Shown here piece after piece: positions 1-13,403 of a stretch of 13,403 nucleotides of DNA; position 1 is the first letter of the stretch; each line of letters starts with the position of its first letter. Both the position numbers and the translations under genes were made by a program. The stretch comes from Paramoeba atlantica (Eukaryota > Protista > Discosea), in contig CDRNVI010000210.1 of NCBI GenBank assembly GCA_977017575.1, forward strand, positions 1 through 13,403, given 5' to 3'. The notes below the pieces were generated by a model. The model saw only the letters and a list, made by a program, of their open reading frames with translations. It was not told the origin of the DNA and ran no database searches.

Positions 1-336
1 GAGAGAGGAGAAATTGAAAAAAAAGAAACCTCAAAAGCAGAAACTTCACAACCCCCAAGAGAGTCATAAAATAACAATTCATTCAACTAAAAACAAAAAA
101 AAAACAAACCAACCAGGAAAAAAAAAAAGAACAAGAAAACCAAGAAGGGGAACGTGAACGTGAACAGAAAAAGCAAAAAAAAAAACAAGGCTCTGTCACA
201 CAAAAATATTATGATTTTTTTCTTGCTGTCTTTTTTTGAAAAGAAAAAAATGAAAAGACTTGGTACCTTACTTGGGGGAGGAGCGCGTTCTTTTTCGTTT
301 TTTCTGTTCGGTTCTGTTCTTTCAGTTTTTCTTTTG

Positions 337-495
337 TTTTTGTTTGTTTGTTCTTTTGTTTGATTGTTTTTTTTTGGTTTCTCTTTTGTTTTGTTTTTGT
401 TTGTGTGTTTGCTTTTGTTTGTTTGTTCTTTTGTTTGATTGTTTTTTTTTTGTTTCTTTTTTGTTTTGTTTTTGTTTGTGTGTGTTTGCTTTTGT
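337..495. repeat. T/G-rich low-complexity tract with a ~75-bp imperfect tandem duplication
   Basis: TTGTTCTTTTGTTTGATTG...GTTTGTGTGTTTGCTTTTGT occurs twice; the GATTG anchors at 362 and 437 give a period of 75. It lies inside a wider T-rich tract (about 290-545). Confidence 0.8.
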
Positions 496-1368
496 GTTTT
501 TTTGTTTTGTTTTTTGTTTTATTTTTTCTTTCAGTTCCTTGATGTGTTTGTTTTGAAAGGATGATTGCCAGACAGTGAATTTGAGAGGATTGATTGAGAT
601 TTTTTTTGGGTTGGTGCACACTTTTCAGGCAACCACTGTTTCTTTTTCTTCAAGTGCAGGGATGCAAACTATTGTTCTGTTAATTGTTTATTATCTGATG
701 AACCATAGAATCCAACTTTCTCCTCTTCATCCCCTTCTAAACAAGATTCTATCACCTTTTCCCATTTGTTCTGCAGAAGAAAATGATGGGTATGAAGATC
801 TCTTAAGTGGCATTCATCAATTCAAAATATTGAATTTTCTTCCTCTTTATTTTTGTTTTTTTAATCAAAATAAAAAATTTATTTTTTTTGAAAATTTTTT
901 GAATTTTTTGAATTTTTTCATTTCGAAACGAAAAAACTCTGGGTTTCACCCTCACCCAAAACTCTGGGCCCAGAATTTTTCAAAAAAAAAAAAAAACAGG
1001 AAAATTCCTCCCTTTTAGAAACCCTCATTACATTAAATTATGTTTGTTTTTTTAACCTCTAACGAGAGGTGAAGTTTTAAACTTCAACTTAGTTCAGTCA
1101 GTCTTTATGCTGAACTTTAGAACTTCTACAAGTTCAGGCTGGAGGATGTACATCAGAAGGGAGAATAATCCAAAGCTCCTTCCAAGGGAATTTATCCTCA
1201 ACTTTTTAGCAGACAGGGCTGAGATGTAACCTGTTCCAATTTTCACACTTCTTCAAGAGCTCCTCACTCCAATCAAATCACTCTACAGCACCAGAAAAAT
1301 TTTCTATAATATCGAAAAACTGGGATTTGAACTCGCCCCCCTGGGGTTGGACATAGTCAAATTTATGA

Positions 1369-1640
1369 CTAAACTACGGGCACCAACCCCCACACCCGAG
1401 AAGTCCTTCGTTTAGGAGAAACGGAGGTGCTCGAAGAAGAGCCCGAGGAGCTTGAAGAGCTTGAGGACTTGGAAGAGGAAGAAGACTTCTTGGTTGATTT
1501 AGAGGTTGACAGTTTGGAGGTTTTCAATGACTTAGAGGAAGAGGAAGAGGAAGAAGACTTCTTGGGTGACTTGGAAGTCAATGATTTGGAGGATGATGAC
1601 TTAGAGGAAGATGATTTAGAAGGAGGTGGATTCAGAGGGT
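1369..1640 (-). other. Ser/Lys-rich low-complexity C-terminal tail of Pol, with a 72-bp (24-aa) imperfect duplication
   Basis: PPPSKSSSSKSSSSKSLTSKSPKKSSSS...SKSTKKSSSS...VSPKRRTSR is in frame with the chromodomain. GAGGAAGAAGACTTCTTGG occurs at 1475 and 1547. Confidence 0.8.
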
Positions 1641-1644
1641 GTTT

Positions 1645-1800
1645 CTGATGATATCTTTTGATTTGTTCTGAAGCATCAATTTGTGAAACATGGATCCATT
1701 CAGTGTCAGCCTTTTGGTAGTGTTTGAAATACACTCAGTAATAAAGTTCTCCATTCGAATACTTATGCTTAAGGATTTCCTTCACTTCAAAATCATAACC
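1645..1800 (-). pseudogene. Chromodomain at the integrase C-terminus (element 1)
   Basis: DFEVKEILKHKYSNGELYY*VYFKHYQKADTEWIHVSQIDASEQIKRY matches the chromodomain pattern (F/Y)EVExIL..R....Y.VKWKGY....TWEP..NL; there is an internal TGA at 1735-1737. Confidence 0.85.
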
Positions 1801-1899
1801 ATCATCATCTTCAACAATCTCTTTGGGTGCTGGCTCTGAATTAACAATAGATATTTCATTTGATTCAGGATGCAGAGTAATCTCGTACCGAACATGGAG

Positions 1900-3150
1900 T
1901 TTCTTTAAGTTCTGAATGTTTTGAATTTCTGAATTCTTCTCTCATTTAAGTTCTTGAATCTGGTAACTTCCATTCTTAAGATCCTCCACAATCACATAAA
2001 TCTCTTGGTAGTAATAGGGTCTGTACTTCTTTGTAATCTCTTTTCCTTTTGATTTGTTTCTCTTCAACACTTGATCACCAACCTTCAACACAGTGTATGT
2101 TCCTTCATTTGCTTTGTCATATCGTTGTTTTTGTTTCACAGCCACTTTCTCTCTCTCCTCTCAAACCCAATTAATCACACCCTCCCTTTCAGTTTGTAGC
2201 TTCTTGACGTAGTCATCAATCAGTACCACTGGTTTGTTCACAGAGCCAAAGAGAGAATTGATTGGCATAATTGGATGTTTCCCAAAGTGAAGATAGAAAG
2301 GTGTGTAACCAGTCAAGGAAGAATGAAAAGTATTGAAAGCAAATTCCACAAGAGGTAAGAGAAGGTTCCAATTGTCTGCATATTTATCAACAAATGAGCA
2401 AATGATTGATTCTGTAACTTTGTGGGAACATTCAACACAGCCATTACTTTTGGAGTTGTAGGGGGCAATAAAAGTTTGTTTCATTCTGAGAAGCTGGGTC
2501 AGTTCTGCAAAAATTTGATTTGCAAATTCTGAACCATTATCTGTTACTATCCACAAAGGCATTGAATTAACACAAACATACTGAAGTAAGGCTTCAGCAG
2601 AGGCTTTGGCAGAGGGATCTGGAATTGCATACAGACGTATATAGCTACTAAAGTTATCAAGGATAGCCAAAATAAAAGAATTCCCACAAGCAGTGACTTT
2701 TGGTCCCTTTGTACAATCCAGGTGGAGTAAAATTCCAGGATAAGAAGCCATGTAAGGGTTTAAATCAGATGTCAATGTCTTTGTTTTCGAGTTGATCACA
2801 CAATTAAGGCAGCAGTGATAGTAACCTTTGATCGCAGCACTCATACCAGGAAAATAATAGGAGACAGCAATTGCATCATAAAGTCACTCAAACTTGCAGT
2901 GTCCAGAGATTAGATCTGAATGATAAGCATTAAATACTGTATTCCACAAACTCTGGGGCAGAATTGCAGGTGGGAGACAACCAGCAGCTGTAGTTTCATC
3001 CACTTTCCTCAAGATTCCGGATTCATCAACCCAGTACTTGTGAGCAGTTCGTTGGAGTGCCCAAAGATAGCACTTCCTCTTAGGCAAGAGGCCATTAATC
3101 AAGTAGTTAATAATCATTGAGCAAAACTTATCTTTCCTTTGGGCCTGAGC
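1900..3150 (-). pseudogene. Retroviral-type integrase (element 1)
   Basis: Zinc-binding region H..SGH...CLNC; catalytic HLD (about 2716), VTDNGSEF (about 2539) and NGCVECSH (about 2431); then W..LLPLVEFAFNT...TGYTPFYLHFG and a KVGDQVL GPY/F-like region. Confidence 0.95.
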
Positions 3151-3429
3151 AAGGTAAGGAAGTTCAACTAAAACCCAATCAATGTCATCCATATCCACTT
3201 CAACATTCTCAGAACTTTTTTTTGCTGTGGAAAGTGGCAGAGGCAGTGATCAAATAGGAGGAATGTCATGAATTTCCAGCTCACTGATTAATTCAATTTT
3301 TTCTAAAATGTCATTTTGTCTCAAGAAGATATGGGTTTTTCCTGAAGAAGATTGTCCCAAATCCACCAACTCTTCAAACCAATGAGTCACATAATCCTTT
3401 GAAGTGGCCTTATCATGATATCCAACATA

Positions 3430-3830
3430 CTGGCGGCTTAGAGCATCAGGGATTGCCATCAACTTTCCAGGTTTGTGAATGACCTTTGGGTGATATTCTA
3501 GAATTCGAGCAACCCAATCGCACAGCATATCATGGTTTGGTACTTTCTGTTGACCTGTTTTAAACATAGATTTGAGAGATTCGCAATCACAGAACACAAT
3601 AGGATTTCGACCACAGATATAATACTTGAAGTTGTTTAATGCCCACAGGATTCCAAGGCCCTCTCACAGAGGATTAGTATACTTCTGCTGTGTCTCTGTG
3701 AGTGTTCGAGAAGCATACTCAATAACTCAGTGGTGGCCATCTTGATCCATCTGAGTGAGAATCGCTCCAAGACCAAGCTTGCTGGTGTCAACATGGATAA
3801 AAAATTCTTTTGAGAAGTCAGGATGGGCCA
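3430..3830 (-). pseudogene. RNase H (element 1)
   Basis: HPDFSKEFFIHVDTSKLGLGAILTQ...IEYASRTLT...W.ARILEY..KVIHKPGKLMAIPDALSR. Confidence 0.93.
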
Positions 3831-4400
3831 TACAGGTTTTGGATGTCAAGAGCTCCTTTAAGAGATGTATCTCCTTGATGGATTCTTGGGATAGTGAAAA
3901 CTTCTTTGGATCCATCACTTTGGCTTTTCTCAAGTGTGTTGTTAAACTGGATGAATGAGGGATGAACCATTTTAACCAAGTAACCATTTCCAAAAATCTC
4001 TCAACTTCCTTTGGAGTAGTTGAAAGTGGGTAATTCTGGATTGCCTCAACTTTTTTCGGATTTGGCTTCAAACCAGCCTTTTCAATGTCTCCTTCTCTGA
4101 TTGGGATCAACTAGAAAGCCTCAGACAGGTCAATAGAGGAAAAATAAGAAGAACTGCCAAGTGCAGCTAAGATTTCATCCATACAGGGTAGTGGATAAGA
4201 GTCCTTCTTTGTTTTTTCATTCAGGCGATGGAAATCCACACAAAACTGAACATTTCCATTCTTCTTGTCCACCAAGAGAATTAGAGCAGCCCAAGGAAAG
4301 TTAGATTTTCTAATCACTTTCCTTTTCACCATCTTGTCAATATGTTTCCATATGATGCAGTCTTCAACAGGTGTGGTTCTACAGGGTTTTGCTCTCAAGG
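3830..4400 (-). pseudogene. Reverse transcriptase with the catalytic core deleted (element 1)
   Basis: VIRKSNFPWAALILLVDKKNGNVQFCVDFHRLNEKTKKDSYPLPCMDEIL...SIDLSEAF*LIPIREGDIEK joins directly to AGLKPNPKKVEAIQNYP. The PFGL and YxDD region is absent. Confidence 0.93.
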
Positions 4401-5349
4401 GTGGACCCTTTGCCTCGATTGGATGACTCGTTGCCGTGGTTTTAGTAATTGGACCTTCTCACTTCTCATCATCCCACAAGTCTTGGAAAGAAACCAACAT
4501 CTCCACTAATTGTATTTTCTGCCTGTCATTCAATTCAGCATTATCCAAACCAAATTTCTCGTATGCTTCTTTGAATTTATCAGACAGATCTTTTTTATAT
4601 GCAGCAGATTTGTTTTGGGTGGCAATGTGAGTAAGCAACTGTATCACAGATGAGTCACAATCGAGGTCAGGGTCGGGGTGTTTGGTGGATCAATCAGATT
4701 TGCCATTTTGATGATCATGCAACTTCTGTCTCTTCTGTTTAGGTTTTTGAAATAAATCCTTATCCTCAATCATTTTCTCAAGCCATGGTCCAGCGAGTGT
4801 ACAGAGATAATTGGCACCAGTCTTTGTATTAACTGATTTTGTGCAAGGTGATTGTTTCTTGGGTACAGATTTTTGAAGACAGGGTTCAATCAAAGAGTGT
4901 TTTGAGAGTTGAAGAAGTTCAGTGTTTTCAACATCATGGTCATTAAGCTGATAAACTGTTCCAACTTCGAGATTTTTCTTCACTTGGACCTCAGTTTCAG
5001 AATGATTCATCACAAGAACATTCAGTGTGTTGTGTTTTTTACCTTGCTTGATTGTAACCAAGCCAAGAAGGAATAACAAACTCTCTGATTCAATTGATGG
5101 AAAGAAGAATCCTTCAGGTGACAATGCACAGCCGTTCAGCATTAGTGGAAGGAACACTGATGATCTCAGAGGGATTGCCTTTGTCTCAGCCAAGAGTACT
5201 AAGGTCTTATCTCACCTCTCTACATCAATGTAAAAATCTGAATCTGTGACCTGAGGAAGGGTGATGTTGAGCTGTGCCAAATTTGCTTGGATGCATTTCC
5301 AACCTTTCCATGTTAAATGACCATCTCTGAGGCCTAGACGACATTGTTT

Positions 5350-5620
5350 CATGTTTGAACAGGAAGGTCATCAATAATGAAGAACCAGAGTCCTTGGGAA
5401 AACCTCTTTCCGACTTGACCACAGTGTGAATCTCTTCATTAATCACAACTTTAGTTGAGTTTCCCACTTTGACTTGAAGCTCATCAGCTTGCCATCAGTT
5501 CAAGATCTCAAATCCAGGACACAAAAGTTGCTGACAATTGATTACATTGATATCAGATCCCGTGTCTATACAAGTAGTAGTTGCTAATCCACCTACCTGA
5601 GACACAACTTCAAATGCACA
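5350..5620 (-). pseudogene. Retropepsin-type aspartic protease (element 1), frameshifted
   Basis: CIDTGSDINVI with DTG at 5558-5566, then LQVKVGN; downstream FFIIDDLPV appears in another frame. There is a TGA at 5495 and there are two frameshifts near 5350-5420. Confidence 0.8.
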
Positions 5621-6274
5621 ACCAATATCCCGGCTTTCCACATTGATTACTAAATTTGGAAGAACATTGATCATGTGATCCAAAGGAAGGTTGGTATGGG
5701 ATGATGGATCAGCCCAAACATAAACATCAGAGTGTTTCAGAGGTTCTTGAACATGAGTGTTGGACTGACTCAGAGGTTCTTTGAATTCAGTTGAGCAACT
5801 AAATGAAATCGAAGAATACAATACAATGGGCTCAGAGCAGTAGAAAAACCCAATGGGAAAACTGGTGCTCAAAGTTCAAAAAAAAAAAAAAGTTGCTTGC
5901 TCAAAAAACCAATTGGTGGAAAAATAGCTGATTCAAAAAGAAGATAAACGATCAAAAGTAGAAGATTGGTTGTTGTGAGAAAACCTGGCCTTCAGGAAAA
6001 AACCTCACCAGAATGTTTGTTCACAAAAACAAGGCACTGTTGTTGTTTCAATTCAAAGAACAAATGTTCAATCTCAGTATCGAAAGTGAGTGTGAGTTCT
6101 GAAAATCAAAACCAGCATCACCAATGAACACGTCTACTTTGGTACAGACTAAAGAAGGCGTGTCAGAAATATGTTGAATGGACAACTGAAGAGCAGTCCT
6201 CAGAAGTCTCATGAAAAAGTGAGAAACTTCCTGATAACATCATCAATGGTGTTCTTTATTTAGATTCACAGAAG

Positions 6275-6340
6275 GTCGACTTGGAGGAGACCAAGGGTCG
6301 ACTTGAAGGAGATTGGGAATTGACTTGGAGAAGATCAAGA
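6275..6340. repeat. Three imperfect copies of a 22-bp tandem repeat
   Basis: GTCGACTTGGAGGAGACCAAGG / GTCGACTTGAAGGAGATTGGGA / ATTGACTTGGAGAAGATCAAGA, starting at 6275, 6297 and 6319. Confidence 0.8.
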
Positions 6341-6530
6341 GTCGGATCAAACGAATAGAGCAGAGAGCTAAGTGTCTTCAGAGTAGCGCATATTGCTCAT
6401 GTGCACAGGCACTGCAGGAACAAACACCATTCTCATGCATAGAGGCAACAAGCATTACTTTTCTGATACCTGGGTTGCTCTCATGTGTATTTGATCATTT
6501 CCCAAAGTTGACCTTTGATTCTCTTCCAAT

Positions 6531-6557
6531 CTCTCTCTCTCTCCCTCTTTCTCTCTT
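6531..6557. repeat. Imperfect (CT)n microsatellite
   Basis: CTCTCTCTCTCTCCCTCTTTCTCTCTT. Confidence 0.7.
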
Positions 6558-7195
6558 TCAACATTGGATCATCTGCAAAGCTGATGTGCAGATTAAGTTC
6601 TACAGGGGTTGTAAAAGAAAAGGGAAAGCACAAGTTTTTGTTAGAAAAGTTAAAAGTGGTTTACTAAGGAGGTTAAAGGTCAGGTGTGATGAAAGAAAAG
6701 GTCTGTGGAGAATTCTTTCAGACATGACCATTCTGGGAAGCAGTTACTGGATCAATAAAGGTGTCCAAAGACAATTTGAGGAATATCTTCTTTAGCATTC
6801 TAGTATAACATGTTATTTTTTTTTTCACATTTCTTGTTTTGTTGTGGGAGTTTGGTTGTTTGTTCATTCATTTAGTTTTGTTCAGAAGCAGCTGTGCACC
6901 CTTCCAGGGCTTGAAAAACATCTAGCTTGTGTTATAAGGATTTGTAAAGCAATGAAGATGTTGTAAAAAGTTTGGAATTACATGGAAAACCCAGTGGGAA
7001 AAAAGCCATGGTTCAGGAGTTGTCCACAGGAGGGAGCCAATGCCAAGAACTGGTGTGGAAGGGGCAAAAGCTCATTGTGTGAGAAAACTCAAGAGTTTTG
7101 GGAGGAAAACCTCACTTTCTTGCAAGAGGAAGGACCATTGGAGTGTAACTCTTGGTTTGTTATTTATAATCAGCATAACAAGTACTGGCTTGTAG

Positions 7196-10100
7196 CCTCC
7201 TCCTCTGAGCAGAAAAATTGGGCTAGAGTTGAGTTGGGAGGGTATTTGTCAAAGTAGCTGCAGCTGCCTGGGGCTGTGGTAGTGGAGGGATAACATTGTA
7301 ATTTTATTTATAAAATTCAATGAGATCAGGAGCATCAATTTCATTTGCAAGAAACTAAACTGCATGGTCTGCTCAGAAATTTTTGTATTGAACTTTATAA
7401 TGAAGTCTTCCTTGTGGGTCAAATTTGTGAGCAAGAATTTTCTTTAATTTATAGTCACAATCATTGCCCAGGTTGAAGTCATCAAATTCAATTTGTTTAT
7501 CATCCTCAGAGAGACAAACAGGTTGTTCTGTGAGTGCCTGGTTTGCAAGTTTATGATTTAATTCATATTGAATTTTTAGTTTTTTTAATCTCATAATATT
7601 TTCAGTTCATGGAAGTTTTTTCCATTTGAGATTTTAGATTGTATATGTTCCATTGAAATGAATACCAGTGACTTTGTAGATTTTTCAATAGAAAAGTGAT
7701 CAATATTTCTTTCCTATGAAGCTGTCTTTGTCATCCTTTGTGAGGAGGATAAAATCTCCAAGGTTCAGCATTTTAATCATTGTATAATGGGTTTCATCAT
7801 AACAATCTTTGTAAAGATTTGTTGCTTTTTGTTTTTGGTCTTTGACCCAAGTAAATACTATATTTTGTTGAGTTTGTAGTGTTTTAACATACTCATGTGC
7901 TGTTGTAACAGGGCAGTATGCTGTGTTGTACAAAGCCTCAATGGATAAGATTGAATGTCTTCCATAGAAAAGAAAAAATGACATATAATTTGTAACTAAA
8001 GATTCAAATGTGTTGTATGCAAATTCTAAGAGTGGGATCAGCAAGTTTCAATCATCTTTGAAGTCATTGATGAAAGCATAGATCATTGTTTTGATCATTC
8101 AATGTGTTTTTTCAACTTTTCCATTACTTTGCAAATGGAAAGGGCAAATCAAGGTGTGTTTGATTCCAAGCAAATAAATCAAGTCAGCAATTAATTCATT
8201 TGCAAATTCTCTTCCATTATCAGTAATAATTTTTAAGAACATTGAATGTAAGCAAACATATTTGAAGAGTGCTGATGCAGATGTATTAGCATTGGGTTGA
8301 GGGATAGCAAAGAAGTGGAAATATTTTGTAAAAATGTTAACAATTGCAAGAATGTGTAAATTTCCTTAAATTGTTCTGTTTGGTTCTGGGGTATAATCAA
8401 TCTGGATTACCAGACCAAAGTATTGTATGTTGTAGGTTAGATTTAATTCTGCACACAATTGAGCAGTTTTGGTTGTTATTTGGCATTCCAAGCAATGGTT
8501 ACAATATACTTTAATGTAAATATATATTTGTTCAAAATAGAATGAATTTCAAATAACTTTGTAAAGTTTTTTGAATTTTCAGTGTTCTCCTGTGGGAGAG
8601 TTATGACTGATGTCGATTACTTCATCCCAGAGAGCTTTGGAGAGAACTGTAAGTGGCAGTTCTTTTTTTATTAGGAACATTTCATTGATTTTTCGAAGAA
8701 TACTTTGGTTGTCAACCCAATATTTGTGAAATTGTGTTTGCAGGTATTTGAGAGCTGATTTTTTTCTAGAAAGTGTCTCAAATTGAAGATAATTAATTAA
8801 TTTTAAATAGTGTTTGTCTTTCTGTTGCATTTGAGCAAGTCATGAAAGATTAACTAGTTGGTCAATTTCTTTTGAAAAAGTGTCCCCCTCCCTTGCTTGT
8901 AGAGGCTTTTTGAAGAAAAAAGAGGTCAGGTTTTGAATTTTCAATTGTTCTTATTTCAGAAATATGTGCATTTTGTTCTTCAAGGAAGTTTAATCTTTGT
9001 AAAAGGTTAAATTGTTTGTCTAGAGATTTGTTAGTTTCACTATTTTCAGTTTTGACTGCTGTTTCAACCATATCTTTAAAAATGTTTGTTATCTCATCAG
9101 TTTCTGTTTTAGTGTCATATGTAGTGTAATGATGGCTGAGGGCATCTGGAATTGCCAATAGTTTGCCTGATTTGTGTATTATTCAGATGTTATACTGCAA
9201 AATTCTTGTGATCCAGTCATAGAATATTTTGTGATTAGGCATATGTTCAGTTGCATTTATTATGTTAGAAAGACTGCTACAATCACAGTATATGATTGAG
9301 TTGTGTCCATAAGCATAATATTTGAATGTATTGAGTGACCAAAGAATTTCAAAACTTTCATGGATTGGATTTATGTATTTTCTTTGTATCTCGATAAGCA
9401 CATAAGATGTATATTCAACAACTCAGTGATTACCATTTTCATCTAATTGTATGAAAATGGTTATAAGATCAGTTTTGCTTATGTTTACATGGATGTAGAA
9501 TTGTTTTGAGAGATTGGGGTGAGCCATGCATGTTTCATCAGTAAGCATTTCTTTTAACAATTCAATTTTATTAATTGTTTTTTTTGTCAATTTAAATGAT
9601 TTGTTATCCAGTTAGATTGCTTTTTGAAGATTTGCAATTAATGTTGAAAACCTTGGTATAAATTTTCTAAGCCATGATGTTATATCTAAAAATCTGCTCA
9701 CCTCTTTTGATGTTCTTGACAGTGAATAGTTTTTGATTGTTTTGACTTTTTTGAGATTAGATGATAATCCATCTTTTGATGTGACAAACTCAAGTATTTC
9801 GAATGTGGGTCTGCAAAAAGAACATTTTGAGGGTTATAAAATGAAATTGTGATCTCTCAATCTTGTGAGAATTTGTTCAAAATGTTTGATATGATCCTCA
9901 AATGATGTACTGAAAGTGAGTATATCATTAAATTAAGTGAAACAACATATCTATAAGAGATTATTTAGAACAGCTTTTATGAATCGTTGTTGTGTTGAGA
10001 GTACATTGCATAACCTGAATGGCATGGAAAGAAATTCCCAGAGGCCATATTTACTTGTAAAAGCTGTTTTTTCAATGTCATTCAGATGAATTAGAATTGA

Positions 10101-10315
10101 CCAAAATGTATTAGTGAGATTAATTGTTAAGAAATAAAAAGCATTCCCCAATATTACAAGTATTTCATTCATTTTTGGAAGTGGATATGAATCTTTCTTT
10201 GTCACTTTGTTAAGTGCTCTAAAATCAATGCAAAATCTGATTTTTCCATTTTTCTTATCAGCTAATAAGATGGATGAAGCCCAAAGTGATTTTGATGGTC
10301 TAATAACTTTATTTA
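7196..10315 (-). mobile_element. 5'-truncated, heavily decayed chromodomain-bearing Ty3/gypsy element 2 (RT, RNase H, IN, chromodomain)
   Basis: RT: VIRPSKSLWAS...RFCIDFRALN...KTAF...MPFRL...*FND...PSKC. RH: IHVNISK...IPDALS. IN: H...EH...CLEC, QID, TDNGREF, NGKVEKTH, LIPLLEFAYNT. One net frameshift near 8880-8920 and many stops. Homology begins at an A-run near 10315-10323; no protease or gag lies upstream. Confidence 0.95.
7307..7456 (-). pseudogene. Chromodomain at the integrase C-terminus (element 2)
   Basis: DYKLKKILAHKFDPQGRLHYKVQYKNF*ADHAV*FLANEIDAPDLIEFYK; the conserved Trp position is TAG (7355-7357). Confidence 0.82.
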
Positions 10316-11429
10316 AAAAAAAATTGGGTTGGTTCAAGGAGACTTTCCTTGTCCAATCTGATTTTCTTTCCTTCATTTGTCATGTTGGTGAAACCCCACC
10401 TAGTTGAGCACTTCAAAGAAATCTGTTATGTCCAGTGGAAAGAGTATGTCCTCTTCCCTTAAGGGCTCCCAAAATGGATCCCACTCCCCCTTGTATTCAA
10501 AGAATGAACAAAAAAACATAAATTCAAGTGGAAATTCTGAAGAAATTCCAATCAAATCAACCTCAAAGAGAGTGCTTGAAGAAGGATGGTGGTCATAAGT
10601 TGAAAAAGAAATACTGAAAACCTTGTCCCATATTGGAACTGAGGTTAACCCTATGAAGAACAACACAATAATTCACCCCATCTTTATAATGGATTCCTTT
10701 TGTTTCTATGAAGAAATGCCAAACTATTAAAGAGCAATGGTCACACTCAACAAAGTTCTTAAGCTGAGAAGAAACTTCCTCTTGTGTGTTATGAAAGGCC
10801 ACCTTAACATGGCCATCTTTGACAAAGAAACACGCAAACCCCTGGAGAAAGTCATTCTGGAAAATGGCTCCTTCCCTATACATTGCAAAAAACTAACGAA
10901 TTTTTTCGAAAGATTTACGAATCGAATCGATTAAGATGACGATTCTATCTGAAAGAGATGAAAAATGTCGAAGCATAAGGTGTGCTAAAAAAGAAACCTT
11001 TCGTTTTTCTTTGATTTTCTCAATTCTTTCTTTTGATTGTATGTGGAAAAGTGAAATGATTGATCCGGTGGTGTTGTTTTTAATAGTTTGTGAATAAAGA
11101 AAAAAAAAAAGGGTTTAGGGCCTAATTACTTTGTTTTGAACCACTTTTTTTCACAATTCGGAAAATCGAGACTGGTAGAAAGATGCGCCTCATTTTTGTC
11201 TTCCTAATGGCATATTTTTTTTTAAAATCCGAATATGTCATAAAAAGTTATAGGCAGTTTACAAAGAGGTCTTATATATGAAATTCACATATAATGATAG
11301 GACTTTAAAGTGGCACCCTACATATTGAGGAAACAAGTGAGCTGGGACACATTTTTTTTGATAACATAATAAAAAAAACTATTTTCTAAAACTTGGACCA
11401 GCCAGATTTTTGATTTTGTCTCATAGAAC

Positions 11430-12025
11430 AAAAATAATTGAGAAAACATTTATATGATTTTTACATATAAACATATAATTTTAGTCTCCTCCCTACATTA
11501 TCAGGTCATATATAAAATTTTTCATAGTTTTCCTTAAACATAGATTAATTTCATGTTTTTACACTACTTTATTACTTTTATTTCTCATTTTTTCATTTTG
11601 AGAGATTTTTATAGAGTCCAAAAATATGAGTATTTTTTCTATGTATTTTACATATAAAAAAACATCAATGAATTGGTACCTACATAAGAGGGTAATATAT
11701 AAAATTTTTCAAAGTTTTCTTTAAACATAGATTAACTTCATGTTTTTACACTACTTTATTATTTTTATTTTTCATTTTTTAATATTGAGAGATTTTTACA
11801 GCATCCTTTTGTAAACATACTTTTGGGACTTTTGGCTCTGTTCCCTATTATAATAAATAATATTATTGCTCCCTATATAAAAACAAAATAAATAAATCTC
11901 AAATTGATTTTCTTTATTTTAAGATTTATTTGATGTTTTTACACTACTCTATTACTTTTATTTTTCATTTTTTAATATTGAAAAATTTTTATAGACCTTT
12001 TATGTGAGCATACTTTTGAGAAAAT
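11430..12025. repeat. Subtelomeric AT-rich tandem repeat, period about 187-193 bp, about 3 copies
   Basis: The core ATGTTTTTACACTACTYTATTAYTTTTATTTYTCATTTTTT starts at 11553, 11740 and 11933. CCTACAT...GGTMATATATAAAATTTTTCA...TTAAACATAGATTAA starts at 11492 and 11679. Confidence 0.9.
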
Positions 12026-12061
12026 ACTTTTTGTAATGTGTTAATAAAATCATGTCAGAAA

Positions 12062-12590
12062 TTAGGGTTTAGGGTTTAGGGTTTAGGGTTTAGGGTTTAG
12101 GGTTTAGGGTTTAGGGTTTAGGGTTTAGGGTTTAGGGTTTAGGGTTTAGGGTTTAGGGTTTAGGGTTTAGGGTTTAGGGTTTAGGGTTTAGGGTTTAGGG
12201 TTTAGGGTTTAGGGTTTAGGGTTTAGGGTTTAGGGTTTAGGGTTTAGGGTTTAGGGTTTAGGGTTTAGGGTTTAGGGTTTAGGGTTTAGGGTTTAGGGTT
12301 TAGGGTTTAGGGTTTAGGGTTTAGGGTTTAGGGTTTAGGGTTTAGGGTTTAGGGTTTAGGGTTTAGGGTTTAGGGTTTAGGGTTTAGGGTTTAGGGTTTA
12401 GGGTTTAGGGTTTAGGGTTTAGGGTTTAGGGTTTAGGGTTTAGGGTTTAGGGTTTAGGGTTTAGGGTTTAGGGTTTAGGGTTTAGGGTTTAGGGTTTAGG
12501 GTTTAGGGTTTAGGGTTTAGGGTTTAGGGTTTAGGGTTTAGGGTTTAGGGTTTAGGGTTTAGAGTTTAGGGTTTAGGGTTTAGGGTTTAG
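12062..12590 (+). repeat. Telomeric repeat array (TTTAGGG)n, about 75.5 units, G-rich strand on +
   Basis: TTAGGG at 12062, then 74 heptamers from 12068 (one variant TTTAGAG at 12558-12564) and a terminal TTTAG at 12586-12590. Confidence 0.99.
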
Positions 12591-13147
12591 ATTATAATCA
12601 AGCACAAACTTGAGGTTGTAGTGGAGTTATTTTAAGAGGATCTGGTATTCCTTGAGATATTAGAAAAAGTGAACCTTATGAATTATATAATGAAGTTGAT
12701 TTTAAATCTTATATAGGAAATAAAGGTGATTGTTTTGATAGATTTTTAATTAGATTAAAAGAAATGCATGAGAGTTTAAAAATAATTTTACAACTTTTAA
12801 ATAATTTAAAAGAAGGTCCTATTTCAAATTACAATAATAAATTAACTATACCTTCAAGATCATTAATGAAGTTTTCTATGGAATCTTTAATACATCATTT
12901 TAAATTATTTACAGAAGGTGTTAATATACCTTTTAATGATGTTTATAGATCTATAGAAGCTCCTAAAGGGGAATTTGGTGTTTTTTTAGTTTCGGGAGGA
13001 TTAAATAGACCGGTAAGATGTAAGATAAAAGCACCAGGGTTTAATCATTTACAATTATTAGATACATTATCAAAAGGACATATGATAGCCGACGTTGTTA
13101 CTATTATAGGTACTTTAGATATAGTTTTTGGGGAGGTTGATCGTTAA
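12590..13147 (+). CDS. nad7: NADH dehydrogenase subunit 7 (49-kDa/NuoD family), C-terminal 185 aa, 5'-truncated at the telomere junction; needs TGA=Trp
   Basis: [26 protein letters not shown]...GDCFDRF...[13 protein letters not shown]...[13 protein letters not shown]...[12 protein letters not shown]...[25 protein letters not shown] at 12611 and 12653 falls at aromatic/Trp positions of the family (W/Y-G-x-S-G and G-x-x-W-D-x-R). The ORF track start at 12764 results from using the wrong code. Confidence 0.98.
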
Positions 13148-13403
13148 TCAAATATTAATATAATATTAAATATTATATATATGCAAAAAAAATTAAATCG
13201 ATTTTTTAATTTAAGAATTAATTCTAGAGGTGCCGCTTTTGAAAATTTAAATATAGGACCTAATTTAAGTCCTTATATGAATAGAGAGAAAATCAAAGAA
13301 TTTTGTAATGAATTTAATAAACAAACTTTTATATATAGATCGGAAGATTTATTAATATATGTTAGATTATTTTTATATACTGATAAATCATTTGTTTTTT
13401 TAA
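12591..13403 (+). other. Mitochondrial-genome-derived segment (NUMT or chimeric join)
   Basis: Very AT-rich and gene-dense, with nad7 and rpl11 separated by 33 bp, TGA used as Trp, and no disablements seen. Confidence 0.9.
13181..13403 (+). CDS. rpl11: Ribosomal protein L11 (uL11), N-terminal 74 aa, running off the window end
   Basis: MQKKLNRFFNLRINSRGAAFENLNIGPNLSPYMNREKIKEFCNEFNKQTFIYRSEDLLIYVRLFLYTDKSFVFL aligns with uL11 motifs (GP.LG..G.NI.EFCK.FN..T...V.I..Y.DRSF.F). It is absent from the ORF track because there is no stop in the window. Confidence 0.85.
   Translation, partial: MQKKLNRFFNLRINSRGAAFENLNIGPNLSPYMNREKIKEFCNEFNKQTFIYRSEDLLIYVRLFLYTDKSFVFL

Follow-up and report, generated by a model that had tools for sequence, protein, structure and literature searches.

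Can a chromosome end capture organelle DNA in vivo, or does what looks like such a capture only arise once the DNA has left the cell? This question is raised by one end of a contig from the amoeba Paramoeba atlantica (CDRNVI010000210.1 of assembly GCA_977017575.1). The window, i.e. the whole stretch of DNA that was analysed (13,403 nt, positions 1 to 13,403 of the forward strand), leads from two retrotransposon copies through subtelomeric repeats into a long telomere tract, which passes directly into mitochondrial DNA (mtDNA). A sequence-only reading had described this terminal arrangement as a subtelomere, (TTTAGGG)x75 in right-end orientation and a linkerless entry into the middle of nad7, and all of these elements were confirmed at the positions originally given, by Tandem Repeats Finder (TRF), strand analysis, Pfam searches and direct reading of the letters. 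Our answer is that the join is very probably an artefact, a single chimeric DNA molecule which formed in vitro and was carried into the assembly, and that an uncapped telomere is unlikely to have captured the mtDNA in the living cell.

The DNA to the left of the telomere contains two retrotransposon copies, both on the minus strand. The first is a decayed Ty3/gypsy-like element (1369-5900), recognized by Pfam matches within broken open reading frames (ORFs): an integrase core at 2164-2844 (rve, E = 1e-11), an RNase H-like domain at 3730-4110 (RT_RNaseH_2, E = 3e-12) and a reverse-transcriptase region at 4111-4398. Its ORFs are fragmented, and its CpG observed/expected ratio is 0.16-0.22. The second copy (7500-10900), likewise Ty3/gypsy-like, is more decayed and AT-richer; it shows a CpG ratio of 0.08 and retains a reverse-transcriptase fragment at 9951-10376 (RVT_1, E = 5e-7). 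An excess of TG/CA is found beside the strong CpG depletion in both copies, and the depletion is much milder (0.65) in the final 1.2 kb before the telomere. A low-complexity, T/G-rich array is also present close to the left end of the window (326-531); its nested periods are 4, 16, 53-57 and 75 nt.

Closer to the telomere, the repeat search identified a family (D1) of three direct repeats on the plus strand (11492-11999), which share a 128-nt core, are spaced by 187 and 193 nt, and are 72-88% identical to the reference copy. All three are located within the last 570 nt before the tract. Direct repeats in this position, immediately internal to a telomere, are typical telomere-associated sequence, and the left-hand DNA thus looks like a real subtelomere. 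A lone telomere-type heptamer lies at 11114-11120, 950 nt inside the tract, and is most likely a chance occurrence.

The telomere tract itself occupies 12062-12590 on the plus strand. Across the window, TRF reported it as one array with a 7-nt period (75.6 copies, 99% matches, score 1051), and a count by unit resolved its 529 nt, or about 75 units, into an initial 6 nt, 73 perfect heptamers, one variant heptamer (12558-12564) and a final 5 nt. The tract is therefore near perfect over about 75 units and bears no sign of erosion. Its G-rich strand runs 5' to 3' toward the end of the window, and C-rich telomere units are absent from the whole window, which means that the tract belongs to the left-hand DNA and marks a right chromosome end. 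The join with mtDNA sits at the distal tip of this right-end-oriented tract, in other words at a natural free DNA end.

Several details of the tract deserve mention in their own right. At the inner edge (12061/12062) the tract begins abruptly, and degenerate units are lacking there. The sole variant unit (12558-12564, G to A) is placed four units from the distal tip; the usual place for variant units in telomeres is the inner edge. It may be a base with little support, from a contig end of thin coverage. The last unit (12586-12590) comprises 5 nt, and the permutation in which it ends is, we presume, the counterpart of the preferred 5' end of the human C-strand. The opposite origin of the structure, de novo addition of a telomere onto mtDNA or onto a nuclear copy of mtDNA (NUMT), was also considered and is ruled out: since its G-rich strand points toward the mtDNA, the tract caps the DNA on its left.

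The junction of telomere and mtDNA (12590/12591) was read directly. It has zero linker, and no adapter, gap or run of N was found at this position. What follows is the 3' part of nad7 on the plus strand (12591-13147, about codons 210-394), intact up to its TAA stop codon (13145-13147). The frame is open from 12587, within the last telomeric unit, to this stop codon when TGA is read as Trp, as is required at two places (12611-12613 and 12653-12655). From 12656 onward the translation matches the Pfam family Complex1_49kDa (E = 1e-63, profile positions 109-271 of 271) and aligns to residues 232-394 of a solved plant Nad7 of 394 residues; this alignment places the junction at about codon 210. After a spacer of 36 nt there follows the 5' part of a putative rpl11 (13184-13403, plus strand), with an ATG at 13184 and 73 codons open to the end of the window. 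Its match to Ribosomal_L11_N (E = 2e-6) is below the Pfam cut-off, and the frame clearly resembles the ORF that comes after nad7 in two related contigs (L001 and L003).

This mitochondrial piece, with about 780 coding nt open in genetic code 4, is free of disablement. The initial claim that the mtDNA is intact and keeps its CpGs was thus borne out, its CpG observed/expected ratio being 0.78, against 0.21 over positions 1-12061. If the piece ever resided in the CpG-eroding nucleus, the time was too short to be detected. Judged from these sequence properties, it is probably undecayed mtDNA of the amoeba itself, and thus an abundant DNA species.

Comparison with related mitochondrial sequences supports this view of the segment. 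The nearest nad7 proteins, found among proteins of 90-285 aa in a set of 5.8 billion, are 69-74% identical and come from three contigs, two of them from metagenome assemblies (L001, 1-2751; L002, 1-2380) and one from a Logan assembly (L003, 1-7418). The gene order in these relatives is nad9, nad7 and an rpl11-like gene, continued on L003 by rps12 and rpl2, and TGA encodes Trp. The order of nad7 and rpl11 in the window is therefore the native one, which identifies the segment as a colinear slice of mtDNA and not a rearranged copy. No nad7 protein closer than 74% was found within the size range and protein set given above, which shows that the mitochondrial lineage of this amoeba is thinly sampled. 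The exact 127-aa nad7 ORF is not on record (the best representative is 60% identical), and an exact 40-mer of 12600-12639 is absent from the metagenome contigs. The stretch itself was detected in four public sequencing runs, where about two thirds of the words sampled from 11000-13403 were present. These runs all belong to one study, and they consequently provide no independent confirmation of the join.

Translation in code 4 agreed with the proposal that the last telomeric G completes an Asp codon: the final base of the tract is the first base of GAT, which is the first in-frame mitochondrial codon. The preceding telomeric TTA would encode Leu, at what had been suggested to be a normally hydrophobic position, and the relatives do carry Leu (L001 and L002) or Val (L003) at the aligned site of nad7. 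Microhomology of up to about 4 nt at the junction is therefore possible, as far as the aligned codons indicate. A match of about 4 nt is unremarkable in AT-rich DNA.

An explanation in which no chimeric molecule ever existed is that two correct reads were merged by the assembler through a spurious overlap. Telomeric repeats at contig ends are known to confound some assemblers (PMC7500977). A merger of this kind needs shared sequence, and nothing telomere-like occurs on the mitochondrial side, either at or after the junction or, in the nad7 of the relatives, before it; nor was a gap or a run of N left at the joint. As the two sides have no repeat in common, a single molecule must contain the join. 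A false overlap is thus largely rejected, and we regard a misjoin of this type as very improbable.

If the join lies within one molecule, the question becomes where that molecule was formed. For the favoured in vitro origin we propose the following course of events. A genuine chromosome end of the amoeba is always present in a DNA extract as a free DNA end, and such an end was probably joined in the tube to a piece of mtDNA, which is very abundant, from the same host. One conceivable route is that the 3' overhang was trimmed during end repair and that blunt ligation followed in library preparation. Another, if the DNA had been amplified, is that a polymerase ran off the chromosome end and switched template onto single-stranded mtDNA, an event made easier by microhomology of a few bases. 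Since no true extension competes beyond a natural end, the assembler could then have extended the contig by 813 bases through the chimera, and the read support beyond the telomere would come from one or very few molecules.

Molecules of this kind are commonplace. In long-read libraries, 0.02-3.17% of the reads are chimeric, with the most in ligation-based preparations (PMC8495745), and misassembled contigs can stem from single chimeric reads (PMC7500977). One Paramoeba genome project combined whole-genome amplification of single cells with nanopore sequencing (PMC12079164), although no link between that project and this window has been established.

Several features of the locus argue for an in vitro chimera. 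The first is the long tract, in which nothing suggests erosion, since fusions of unprotected telomeres normally have short tracts (PMC6690834). The second is the pristine state of the mtDNA, with its genes in native order. The third is the way in which the sequence stops. The window ends 813 nt past the junction, in the middle of rpl11, and within these 813 nt there is neither a second nuclear flank nor a new telomere cap; many reads crossing the junction should have extended the contig further. Re-capping downstream of the mitochondrial segment, which had been put forward as something to look for, was accordingly sought and is absent up to the window end. Other observations point in the opposite direction: the two partners stem from one organism, neither an adapter nor a linker separates them, microhomology is possible, and telomere fusions in human cells are known to take up mtDNA (PMC6690834, PMC13431167). 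The sequence-only reading had offered both a capture and an artefact, the latter as at least as likely a priori. It is the artefact branch that has gained weight, through the long, apparently full-length tract, the pristine mtDNA and the lack of a new cap, while the idea of capture as a healing route has found no positive support.

It should be considered in this context that the join may have formed in the living cell as a rare somatic event, in which a deprotected telomere was end-joined in one or a few cells to mtDNA that had leaked into the nucleus, and a single such molecule was sequenced. In human chronic lymphocytic leukaemia (CLL) cells, mtDNA was captured in 4 of 914 fusions of dysfunctional telomeres (PMC6690834; see also PMC13431167), and double-strand breaks in yeast capture mtDNA by end-joining (PMC11372161). 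Partners from the same organism, zero linker and possible microhomology are also in keeping with such an event, and the mtDNA would be expected to be pristine if the join were only a few generations old. The tract is nevertheless long (about 75 units) in comparison with the typically short tracts in fusions, and a somatic join of this kind is, by its sequence alone, indistinguishable from a chimera made in vitro. We consider this explanation very unlikely.

A different possibility is that the structure is clonal, i.e. fixed or common in the population, and represents a very recent NUMT at the tip of a telomere. The telomere tract would then be interstitial, and the cap or the other chromosome arm would lie beyond the assembled sequence. 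The join is indeed gapless at the contig level, and an assembler would soon break inside a copy identical to the high-copy mtDNA, so that the shortness of the extension does not settle the matter. Against this, reads from a clonal structure should carry the contig many kb into the mtDNA instead of 813 nt, and the segment has no second nuclear flank or distal telomere. It also shows zero decay and a mitochondrial level of CpG, compared with 0.08-0.22 in the nuclear repeats. A clonal NUMT at this telomere therefore appears highly improbable, and the chimeric molecule remains the preferred explanation of the join.

Were the join real, its implications would be considerable. End protection in this lineage would then have to be so leaky that long telomeres could capture organelle DNA, and the join would reveal a new source both of interstitial telomere tracts and of terminal NUMTs, with an interstitial tract caught at its birth. 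It would also place organelle DNA at the long, seemingly intact telomere of a free-living or parasitic amoeba. To our knowledge, the only telomeres at which capture of mtDNA has so far been documented are short, dysfunctional ones of human cells. That the tip of a full-length, apparently normal telomere was joined in vivo to leaked mtDNA is, in our estimation, quite unlikely.

The favoured reading, a chimeric molecule formed in vitro, has consequences of its own. Chimeric joins of this type could pass for NUMTs, for lateral gene transfers or for transfers from symbiont to host. In practical terms, the contig end is best cut back to the telomere, and junctions between genomes in this assembly should be distrusted until they are confirmed by reads.

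Comparison with known systems places the locus as follows. Interstitial telomeric sequences resemble it in having non-telomeric DNA on both sides of the tract in the assembled sequence. Known interstitial tracts are usually short or degenerate. They have nuclear flanks within chromosomes, whereas the present tract is near perfect and of the terminal type, and would count as interstitial only with a genuine join. NUMTs share with it the presence of colinear mtDNA next to nuclear DNA, and microhomology is possible at their junctions but not required (PMC2820518, PMC11372161 and PMC3907307). A NUMT, however, arises at an internal break and is bordered by nuclear DNA on both sides; here the nuclear DNA is on the left side only, and the break would be the tip of a chromosome.

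Human telomere fusions with mtDNA, known from CLL and from crisis models, offer a biological parallel, in that telomeric DNA is end-joined to mtDNA (PMC6690834, PMC13431167). In the passages found of Liddiard 2016 (PMC4864465), mtDNA in fusions is not described; support for it comes from a later paper citing that study (PMC13431167) and from PMC6690834. The telomeres in the human fusions are eroded or cut, and the mtDNA is enclosed by two chromosome ends, whereas here the tract has about 75 units and nothing comes after the mtDNA: a fusion would show a second chromosome end or arm past the captured DNA, and the present sequence ends 813 nt into it. The resemblance to chimeric long reads extends to the linkerless, end-to-end join of two unrelated molecules, one of them very abundant, to the position of the join at a natural free end and to the short extension beyond it, and it is on this anatomy that the locus is classed with them.
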